Source: Orbicella franksi (lineage: Eukaryota). From it: a stretch of DNA of 64,000 nucleotides. The stretch lies in NCBI GenBank assembly GCA_964199315.1, contig OZ116704.1, positions 11,842,001-11,906,000 of the forward strand. Direction: 5' to 3'. Shown piece after piece: positions 38,317-40,002 of this stretch. Each line of letters begins with the position of its first letter. Position 1 is the stretch's first letter. The position numbers and the translations under genes are program-made. The notes under the pieces are model-generated. The model saw nothing but the letters and a program-made list of their open reading frames with translations. It ran no database searches and was not told where the DNA came from.

Positions 38317-40002
38317 ATGGAACTGAATCACGGAGGATATCGCTATAAATCGATCGTAGTGACAGGAATAGCAGATCTGGCGTCCACTGAAGCGTTCAGC
38401 GATTGTAACAGGTACATCCTTGATTGTCGAACTCTACAACCAGACCAAATTTTAACCGAATTAACATCATTATGCCAGTTTATTCAACACTCGAAAGTGT
38501 CGCACGTCTGGATAAATTGTGGCCACGGAAGATTCCTCGAGATCAAGGAACGGCTGGGCAAAATATTGAAGGAAAATGGCACAGAGTCTGAAGACACTCA
38601 TCACGCAATCCTAAAACTCACGACGCGCGATCAGTCGGTACCTGTCGCTGACGCTTTAAAAACTAGCATCGATGTCCTCAATTTCGGAAATAATCTGCTA
38701 GATATCCATCGTTTGTTGGACGCTCATCCTGGTCTTTTGAAGGGAAAAGCTCATCTGAATAATGCACTGAAGAGGAAACGACAAAATGACAACGATGAAT
38801 CTGCCGTTGCGTTACCTACAGCAGCATATAGCGATAAACGTCGACCTCGCAAAAATGTCTTTAACGAGTTGAAACGAATGACCGCTGAATCAAATGAAAG
38901 CCGAAGGAAGTGCTACATGTGCGATTCCACAGCTGGTTTTGATCACGTGTGCGATGATTGTCATAGTTTGAACAGTGACATGAAGAAAGTTACGTGCGAT
39001 TTGAAAGGAAGGTACGCTATCGTGACAGGTGGCCGAATCAAGATTGGCTTCGAAACTACTCTCCGCTTGTTGAGAGATGGATGTTTCGTCATCGCGACAA
39101 CTCGATTTCCAGCCAATGCAGTTGAACACTTTAGCAATGAGAAAGATTTTAGTGTCTGGAAACACAGGCTGAAGATCGTCCGACTGGATCTTCAAGATAT
39201 GCGCTCCATCAACGAGTTCCTTGAGAGCGTCAAGAAAAACATCCCTCATCTGGATATTTTAATCAATAACGCTGCCCAAACAATCTCTCGGCCTCTTCAA
39301 TATTATGCACCTCTTATCTCCGAGGAAGTAAAGCGCCTGCAAAACTTGACAAAAGATGCGAACAATCTGATTGTCAATAAGAGCCAAGCATTGGACCAAT
39401 TCAATTCCATGACTTCTTCTACACCATGTCGATCTCTTCCATTCGAGGCAAAGTCGAGTGATTTTCCAGAAGGAGAGAAGGACAAACATGGAGAACAATT
39501 GGACTCCCGCTTGAGAAACAGTTGGACATACAATCTAGACGAGGTTCCACTGCAAGAACTTCTGCAGGTCTTGACCATCAATGCAGTAGGCCCGTTCATT
39601 TTGACAGCAAAACTTAAACCACTGTTAAAACAAAGTCCTTTCCAGCGAAAATTTGTCGTGAACGTGTCTGCAATGGAGGGGCAGTTTTCTCGCATCTCGA
39701 AGGGTCATCGCCATCCGCACACCAATATGGCAAAAGCTGCTTTGAATATGTTGACACGAACAAGTGGATTGGAATATCAGATGGATGGCATCTACATGAC
39801 GGCTGTTGACACTGGCTGGGTCACGGACGAACGACCTTTCCATCAAGCACAACACGAGGCGGTCACAAAAGGATTTACACCGCCTCTGGATTGCCAGGAC
39901 GGAGCTGCCAGAGTTTACCATCCAGTCATTCATGGACTTAACCCCGACAATTCGCCATACTTTGCTGTCTTTTTGAAAGACTTTAAACCTAAAAGCTGGT
40001 AA
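38317..40002 (+). CDS. Intronless atypical short-chain dehydrogenase/reductase (SDR) with a 4-Cys motif and a long N-terminal extension, 561 aa
   Basis: Single 1686-nt ORF. Motifs: Rossmann IVTGGRIKIG (39025-39048), LDILINNAAQT, VVNVSAMEG, active-site-region HPHTNMAKAALNM (39712-39750), AVDTGWVTDE; CYMC...CDDC (38911-38961) just before the Rossmann fold. Confidence 0.9.
   Translation: MELNHGGYRYKSIVVTGIADLASTEAFSDCNRYILDCRTLQPDQILTELTSLCQFIQHSKVSHVWINCGHGRFLEIKERLGKILKENGTESEDTHHAILKLTTRDQSVPVADALKTSIDVLNFGNNLLDIHRLLDAHPGLLKGKAHLNNALKRKRQNDNDESAVALPTAAYSDKRRPRKNVFNELKRMTAESNESRRKCYMCDSTAGFDHVCDDCHSLNSDMKKVTCDLKGRYAIVTGGRIKIGFETTLRLLRDGCFVIATTRFPANAVEHFSNEKDFSVWKHRLKIVRLDLQDMRSINEFLESVKKNIPHLDILINNAAQTISRPLQYYAPLISEEVKRLQNLTKDANNLIVNKSQALDQFNSMTSSTPCRSLPFEAKSSDFPEGEKDKHGEQLDSRLRNSWTYNLDEVPLQELLQVLTINAVGPFILTAKLKPLLKQSPFQRKFVVNVSAMEGQFSRISKGHRHPHTNMAKAALNMLTRTSGLEYQMDGIYMTAVDTGWVTDERPFHQAQHEAVTKGFTPPLDCQDGAARVYHPVIHGLNPDNSPYFAVFLKDFKPKSW

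Follow-up and report, generated by a model that had tools for sequence, protein, structure and literature searches.

The stretch of DNA analysed here, which we call the window, comprises 64,000 nucleotides of the stony coral Orbicella franksi (contig OZ116704.1), and the question it raises is how an uninterrupted gene for a short-chain dehydrogenase/reductase (SDR), of an uncharacterised subfamily otherwise bacterial and protist, came to reside there. A sequence-only reading of the window had taken this open reading frame (ORF) for an old, ameliorated horizontal acquisition of microbial type, or a retrocopy of one. Our analysis showed that the ORF is a genuine nuclear gene of a stony coral of the robust clade, present in one copy and transcribed, and that copepods, medusozoans and marine plankton eukaryotes share it in a pattern that the species tree cannot explain. 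The earlier observation was confirmed and its interpretation partly supported. We lean towards ancient transfer, once or more often, of a marine protist gene into animals, neither recently nor directly from bacteria, as a somewhat better than even account of the trees described below. What had been a guess at horizontal gene transfer made by eye has become a defined case of a long-resident, ameliorated and expressed host gene. The gene, its transcript and its conserved neighbour are as follows.

38317..40002, + strand: single-exon coding sequence, 561 aa plus stop codon (G000:C7:11880317-11881999)
37766..38316, + strand: unspliced 5' untranslated region (UTR), start approximate; the RNA contigs of runs X5 and X1 start at 37766-37940 and run on into the ORF
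40003..40225, + strand: 3' UTR with ATTAAA at 40133-40138; the RNA contigs reach 40225, the edge of the stretch compared
44477..45475, - strand: single-exon gene for a rhodopsin-type G protein-coupled receptor (GPCR) of 332 aa, the next gene downstream of the SDR gene

The ORF starts with ATG and is uninterrupted, just as the sequence-only reading had it. A six-frame search of the whole 497-Mb assembly found a single copy, on the chromosome-scale contig C7, the other two matches being unrelated SDRs at 33-37% identity. A processed retrocopy with a surviving parent was rejected, since this copy alone is present in the genome; the location is ancestral, with the GPCR neighbour kept, and no A-run follows the ATTAAA. 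The base composition had been judged to be like that of neighbouring exons, and the measured values agreed: the GC content was 0.448 and that of third codon positions (GC3) 0.456, versus 0.452 and 0.471 for the GPCR gene. The correlation of relative synonymous codon usage between the two genes (r=0.20) was too noisy for use.

The SDR stretch is present in at least 14 RNA runs, poly(A) libraries among them, which come from about 13 studies. The RNA contigs of runs X5 and X1 span about 37.8-40.2 kb continuously, with no splice joint in the ORF; the intergenic bins upstream of the transcript were silent and the coverage was transcript-shaped. Essentially no raw reads of two poly(A) runs (X23 and X24) matched the SDR stretch. 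The X5 contig, which comes from a related organism, lacks 17 nt at 39407, in the variable insertion loop of the coding sequence, which would shift the frame, and the X1 contig lacks 19 nt at 38272, in the 5' UTR. Such gaps could reflect differences between alleles or species, or errors of assembly.

Comparison with other coral assemblies showed that a GPCR orthologue lies directly downstream of the SDR gene, on the opposite strand, in L002 (79% amino acid identity), L007 (73%) and L008 (68%), all three ORFs matching PF00001 (7tm_1). The synteny in other anthozoans, which the sequence-only reading had named as a check, is kept in these three corals. The coral part of the maximum-likelihood (ML) gene tree agreed with the split between Robusta and Complexa. 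The SDR gene has stood beside the same GPCR gene since before that split, and the transfer event, if there was one, predates it. Because this synteny is conserved in other coral assemblies, a contaminant contig, against which the sequence-only reading had argued, or a chimeric join, for example with symbiont or bacterial DNA, is practically excluded. Nothing was found in favour of such an origin beyond a run of 180 N at 41718-41897, the only N run, between the two genes and 1.7 kb past the SDR stop codon; against it stand the recurrence of the arrangement in three other assemblies, the host-like GC, the orthologues with spliceosomal introns, the agreement of the coral subtree with the species tree and the chromosome-scale contig.

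Full-length orthologues were found in scleractinians of both clades, namely in Oculina (78%), Desmophyllum (76%) and Stylophora (70%) among the Robusta and in Acropora and Montipora (about 62%) among the Complexa. In four complex-coral loci (L002, L003, L007 and L008, the L007 cluster including Montipora capricornis and the L008 cluster Acropora cervicornis) the coding sequence consists of three exons, with two introns at identical sites. The equivalents of these sites in the window are the following.

39565..39570, + strand: equivalent of the intron 1 site, phase 0, between Q417 and V418; seamless CAG GTC in the window
39850..39852, + strand: equivalent of the intron 2 site, phase 2, inside codon 512; intact CAA in the window

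The junctions of intron 1 were read as CAG/GT...AG/GTT (the stroke marks the splice point) in L002, L003 and L007, and those of intron 2 as GCC AG/GT...AG/A CAC in all four loci. Intron 1 of L008 is short (about 110 nt), and its 5' end was the only junction at which the GT..AG ends were not read. Among the Robusta, the coding sequence of the window is uninterrupted, and so are that of L001, which is 91% identical and sits on a 27-kb contig, and that of L090, which is of the Stylophora/Pocillopora type and has 3.7 kb of AT-rich non-coding DNA upstream. In the careful ML tree, all lineages with a broken genomic ORF grouped with Acropora and Montipora (support 82/84), and the robust-coral lineages had full-length ORFs only. 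Outside the corals, L009 (a Tigriopus-like copepod, 27-kb contig) has a single ORF through both intron sites, flanked by genes for a PX-BAR sorting nexin, TRAP-delta, DnaJ and a C2/CUE protein; P0030 (a 938-aa ORF on a 3-Mb eukaryotic contig) and the genomic fragments P0347 and P0349, from another group, are also uninterrupted at both sites.

As these outgroups have no introns, parsimony suggests that the single-exon coding sequence is ancestral and that the two introns were gained later, in the stem of the complex corals, at perfect proto-splice sites (CAG/G and CAG/A). We consider this polarity fairly probable and put it no higher, because the outgroups with genomic sequence (the copepod, P0030 and P0347/P0349) are distant. 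The reverse, in which both introns are ancestral and the Robusta lost them at once by recombination with a reverse-transcribed mRNA, so that the state in the window is derived, seems unlikely to us, although one event would account for both absences, the intronless state of a monophyletic Robusta fits the tree, the kept synteny agrees with replacement in place, and the exact removal of two introns from the 3' third of the gene is the classic signature of loss mediated by reverse transcription. It needs extra gains or losses, since both the nearest member with genomic data (the copepod L009) and the more distant P0030 and P0347/P0349 are uninterrupted, and both sites are of the perfect proto-splice type expected of gains. 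The coding sequence to which the sequence-only reading pointed was probably intronless from the start; an intronless gene in an intron-rich cluster is weak evidence of transfer, as the complex-coral orthologues carry two canonical introns at the same locus. The clean division of the two introns between Robusta and Complexa makes them a phylogenetic marker and a possible case of intron gain after acquisition.

An exhaustive HMMER search for the family yielded 1097 clusters (50% identity) at E<=1e-30. The bacterial members (Deinococcus, Hymenobacter, cyanobacteria, Armatimonadota, Myxococcota, Planctomycetota and Actinomycetota) align with residues 195-561 only, the C-terminal 65% of the coral protein, at 42-49% identity. 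This part, an SDR preceded by four invariant cysteines (the Cys4-SDR core), also occurs with other N-terminal extensions in Cavenderia, Acanthamoeba, Stygamoeba, Mayorella, the malawimonad Gefionella and Euglenozoa. The Cavenderia fasciculata protein P0236 (1037 aa) has a PhyH (phytanoyl-CoA dioxygenase-like) domain fused to the core, a hint at lipid-like or isoprenoid substrates for the family.

The N-terminal domain of the coral protein is confined to a small eukaryotic clade, and on this point the label of a simply microbial-type enzyme did not stand. No bacterial lineage with this domain, or inside the coral and copepod clade, was found among 80 bacterial loci and 1097 family representatives. 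The clade contains the corals, Clytia hemisphaerica (two copies), Rhopilema esculentum, Tigriopus, Lepeophtheirus, Neocalanus and several GC-rich plankton groups, so that the animal members come from three cnidarian classes and three copepod orders. The statement that the protein is not a vertebrate or insect SDR was correct, and it left out that other animals (copepods, a hydrozoan and a scyphozoan) have the family. No sea anemone, octocoral, Hydra or non-copepod bilaterian was named among the matches listed, about one quarter of whose entries are named.

All runs in which the P0033-39 group was seen were marine metagenomes or metatranscriptomes, and they belonged to 13 studies. Two of its transcripts had GC3 values of 0.90 and 0.69, versus 0.43-0.46 in the coral and copepod genes, and its GARP/FYMINK values were 1.0-1.85, versus 0.51-0.85 in all named animals; those of the P0028-32 group and of P0025 were intermediate to high. 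Judged by composition and habitat, these groups are most likely planktonic protists of high GC content.

In the ML tree the clade of the coral gene received a support of 100/100, with a stem of 0.69, and joined among bacteria, not beside Amoebozoa. The grouping of all eukaryotes (the clade with Amoebozoa and the malawimonad) cost 3.3 units of log-likelihood, with p=0.285 in the approximately unbiased (AU) test, so that the protein tree cannot separate a bacterial from a eukaryotic origin of the clade. Within the clade, the AU test rejected the cnidarians as one group (p=0.002), the copepods as one group (p=0.012) and the named animals as one clade against the GC-rich groups (p=0.0002); the likelihood cost of a within-clade constraint was large (52 units). 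Two subclades each hold a cnidarian and a copepod. Comparison of scores showed that the coral protein is far closer to Tigriopus (534 bits, E 1.5e-154) than to the best bacterium (361 bits; Deinococcus, E 4.6e-102), and the alien index calculated from these E-values, about -120, carries no bacterial signal.

We favour transfer because the animal sequences are interleaved with those of probable protists, because the animal coding sequence appears to be ancestrally intronless, because the hosts are marine animals that eat or harbour protists and because a coral SDR published independently, perhaps this very gene, was traced to chlorophyll-c algae (see below). The gene would have passed from marine protists into animals and been resident at the GPCR locus before the Robusta and Complexa separated, and the complex corals would afterwards have gained two introns at proto-splice sites. 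The old horizontal acquisition of the sequence-only reading is compatible with a tree that conflicts with the animal tree; a bacterial source is not supported. Its own argument for the opposite case, that intron-bearing orthologues following the species tree would speak for vertical inheritance or a simple retrocopy, applies within the corals, where such orthologues exist and the subtree tracks the species tree; the animal-wide tree conflicts with it. A direct transfer of a bacterial SDR to a coral, with later amelioration, is very improbable. The bacterial sequences match well over the Cys4-SDR core and the ML tree places the clade among them, and yet the N-terminal domain is missing from bacteria, the coral sequences stand far nearer to those of copepods, medusozoans and eukaryotes of the plankton, and the clade hangs on a long private stem whose attachment point the AU test does not settle.

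Vertical inheritance is a stronger rival, although we find it doubtful. It supposes that an early eukaryote or early animal already possessed the three-part gene, as two or three paralogues, and that after many independent losses, with no transfer, only some protists, Cnidaria and Copepoda still have it. A single origin of the unique N-terminal domain in a fully supported clade, the two copies of Clytia, the presence of the core in Amoebozoa, a malawimonad and Euglenozoa, the p-value for a single eukaryotic clade, the host-like composition and the stable synteny all agree with it, as do the two subclades with a cnidarian and a copepod in each, which ancient paralogues predict. Its price is loss in nearly all bilaterians, in sea anemones, in octocorals and in most protists; with animal monophyly rejected and probable protists interleaved, the paralogues must also predate the split between animals and those protists, and a coding sequence without introns in most animal members is unusual for an ancient animal gene. 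Several points weigh against the transfer that we prefer. The grouping of all eukaryotes was not rejected, which keeps vertical descent viable; the groups for the within-clade AU tests were set after inspection of the tree, so that their p-values are optimistic; and three cnidarian classes with three copepod orders would need about five independent acquisitions. The intron polarity depends on distant outgroups, the protist label was drawn solely from base and amino-acid composition and occurrence in seawater, and the absence from anemones, octocorals and other bilaterians was read from ranked lists with about a quarter of the entries named. The cofactor, the substrate and the role of His466 discussed below are predictions from sequence. 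A more specific form of the transfer reading, which we offer tentatively, is independent capture of the gene, intronless each time, by several groups of marine animals that feed on or harbour such protists (stony corals, hydrozoans, scyphozoans and two or more lineages of copepods), introns following later in the complex corals. If true, such recurrent capture would be a repeated eukaryote-to-animal transfer of one gene, with its domestication visible in progress.

The protein matched two Pfam models, adh_short (PF00106) with 68.8 bits (cutoff 26.6) over residues 233-328 and PF13561 with 48.5 bits (cutoff 27) over residues 408-503. This split match leaves about 80 residues between the halves and about 225 residues in front of them. 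An AlphaFold model made with the family alignment had a mean predicted local distance difference test score (pLDDT) of 83.8, and conservation was scored on 39 aligned homologues from animals, protists and bacteria. The protein was divided into these parts.

38317..38886, + strand: N-terminal domain and linker; residues 1 to about 140 alpha/beta, 141-195 disordered, ending in Y-x-D-x-RRP
38911..38961, + strand: Cys4 zinc-ribbon motif, C199-x2-C202 ... C212-x2-C215
39001..39300, + strand: Rossmann cofactor half (PF00106), residues 229-328, with TGGRIKIG, TTRFP (R263) and NNAAQT
39301..39537, + strand: SDR insertion of about 80 aa, residues 329-407, the gap between the Pfam stretches; a variable part followed by FPxG...DLRxxNSW
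39538..39828, + strand: catalytic half (PF13561), residues 408-504, with S451, K462, H466, H468, T469, N470 and K473

The motifs quoted in the sequence-only reading were all present, invariant or nearly so: the cysteines C199, C202, C212 and C215 (all four invariant in the 39 sequences), TGGRIKIG, TTRFP, NNAAQT, HPHTNMAKAALNM and DTGW. The Rossmann half was modelled as beta-alpha-beta at residues 233-317 with a pLDDT above 90. Its glycine loop is a variant in which Lys replaces the middle Gly of TGxxxGxG, and R240 and K242 of this loop are invariant, as is R263 after strand 2. In classical SDRs, basic residues at the glycine loop or after strand 2 indicate NADP(H), and because R240, K242 and R263 are basic, the coral SDR most likely binds NADP(H). 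In the insertion, D396, N401, S402 and W403 are invariant, and the insertion probably forms a substrate lid. P0030 has a Ser/Thr/Pro-rich expansion of about 300 aa (residues 435-740) exactly in this loop, still within its single 938-aa ORF.

The position of the classical YxxxK motif has no Tyr, Thr469 standing four residues before Lys473. In the HMMER alignment the catalytic Tyr of FabG 5b1y fell on His466, followed by a three-residue insertion before Lys473. The protein is an SDR by fold and profile, and in place of the Ser...Tyr-x3-Lys triad it has Ser451 and His466-x6-Lys473. The residues H466, H468, N470 and K473 were invariant, and S451 and T469 nearly so. Since the active-site residues do not vary between bacterial and coral members, the family has probably kept catalysis by way of a modified proton relay, and a dead enzyme is the less likely reading. 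The coral protein is predicted to use NADPH to reduce a hydrophobic carbonyl or enoyl substrate, for which His466 would donate the proton.

The N-terminal domain (residues 1-140) was modelled as compact, with a pLDDT of about 90, and carries the motifs ILDCR, VW(L/I)N, FLEIKERL, LKL and HPGL. A word-based search with residues 1-195 found corals only, and local profile searches reached the copepods (phmmer E 1e-14 to 1e-17) and the P0033-38 group (profile E about 1e-11); phmmer and profile searches of the family found no bacterial member with the domain. A Foldseek search against the PDB returned nothing at E<=0.001 and an atlas search no usable match. VIA-align gave STAS-type domains Z scores of 5-6 over about 95 residues and a best Z of 6.8, in a tool whose noise range is 7-8. 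A degenerate RNI-type leucine-rich repeat (LRR; PF13516) was rejected as its identity (hhalign against the LRR_6 partner proteins of the bacterial homologues, probability 0.2%, E 0.27; no LRR by Pfam).

The bacterial loci offered a clue to partners of the family. In 12 of the 80 loci, belonging to five phyla, the gene right behind the SDR gene on the same strand encodes an RNI-type LRR_6 protein (about 395 aa) and often overlaps the SDR stop codon (L052-L065; for example L058:4124-5404 and L056:7406-8560). In the long homologues P0135, P0138, P0183 and P0211, LRR_6 repeats are fused ahead of the Cys4-SDR core. The operonic and fused arrangements are a gene-fusion (Rosetta-stone) link of the LRR protein to the family, which seems to work with a protein-binding partner domain. 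The N-terminal domain of the animal and protist proteins is probably a regulatory or docking module and may play this part. The other bacterial neighbours (a PAS histidine kinase, GAF-SpoIIE, a glycosidase) were generic and not conserved, and no metabolic operon that could point to a substrate was found among the 80 loci.

Other features of the locus were also recorded. To the right of the SDR gene, the microsatellites reported earlier are real, namely (TGAACGAA)x40 at 40245-40567 and a CTGA-type array at 40681-40856. A 115-aa minus-strand ORF at 40229-40576 (SFIHSFIR repeats) was rejected as a gene, being merely the translation of the (TGAACGAA)x40 microsatellite. The left neighbour of the SDR gene in the window is a Calx-beta/ZP gene. 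In L002, L007, L008 and the P0023 locus an ORF with immunoglobulin domains (Ig_3/I-set) precedes the SDR gene by a few kb; in L001 such an ORF follows it. A 31-nt piece of the window (36819-36849) occurs inside highly expressed RNA contigs (depth 64-72, two runs) that are unlike the window on both sides of it, and looks like a micro-exon of another gene with its remaining exons outside the stretch. At 36455-36619, one RNA contig (depth 267) skips 63 nt, from 36488 to 36552, with AC..AG ends.

Comparison of the coral protein with known systems began with the literature, where no paper mentioning LOC111325533 was found. Searches for characterised relatives by structure (Swiss-Prot models of the AlphaFold Database) and by sequence (PDB) gave generic SDRs only, and all NCBIfam matches were far below the cutoffs. 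The best structural matches of the core were SDRs of the RDH11-14, WWOX, DHRS12-13, DHRSX and TIC32 type (Foldseek probability 1.0, E 1e-10 to 1e-12), the closest in Swiss-Prot being RDH12, WWOX, RDH14, TIC32 and DHRS13, at sequence identities of 15-21%. In common with the coral SDR, these proteins have a Rossmann fold, the catalytic Ser and Lys, an NNAG-like motif and an Arg that follows strand 2; they differ in having the Tyr of YxxxK and in lacking the zinc ribbon, the 80-aa insertion and the N-terminal domain. The divergent SDRs of the FabI/InhA type (PF13561) are matched by the C-terminal half of the coral protein. The proton donor of FabI has the spacing Y-x6-K, which H466-x6-K473 shares; however, the coral residue is His and not Tyr, the glycine loop and the remainder are not FabI-like and there is no context of fatty-acid synthesis. 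The bacterial Cys4-SDRs, annotated as 'SDR family oxidoreductase' (Deinococcus, Hymenobacter, cyanobacteria, Armatimonadota, Myxococcota and others), have the same four cysteines, insertion and HPHTNMAK block over residues 195-561 and differ in having no animal/protist N-terminal domain. A very large family of bacterial and eukaryotic proteins (over 1000 clusters at 50% identity) is thereby flagged as uncharacterised, with an invariant Cys4 ribbon and a His for the catalytic Tyr.

The closest published case is a coral-specific SDR, A. digitifera_8849, listed as a candidate for horizontal gene transfer in Table 1 of Bhattacharya et al. (2016, eLife 5:e13288; PMC4878875). The authors report that this SDR is nested in chlorophyll-c algae with 100% support, occurs in stony corals and not in a sea anemone or a sea fan, and is proposed to be a scavenger of reactive carbonyls. 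Its distribution resembles that of the present gene, which occurs in corals and GC-rich plankton and had no named anemone or octocoral match. The two may be the same gene; their identity could not be verified, no match being present in the supplements, and this too weighs against our reading. The paper gives no account of members in copepods or medusozoans, nor of the N-terminal domain, the Cys4 motif, the replaced Tyr or the introns that differ between corals. The coral SDR is not a new kind of system, since coral candidates for horizontal transfer have been published since 2016 and this gene may be among them. New by comparison are the difference in introns between the two coral clades, the members in copepods and medusozoans, whose placement contradicts the species tree, the build of the enzyme in three parts, with His where the catalytic Tyr would stand, and the linkage to LRR proteins in bacteria.

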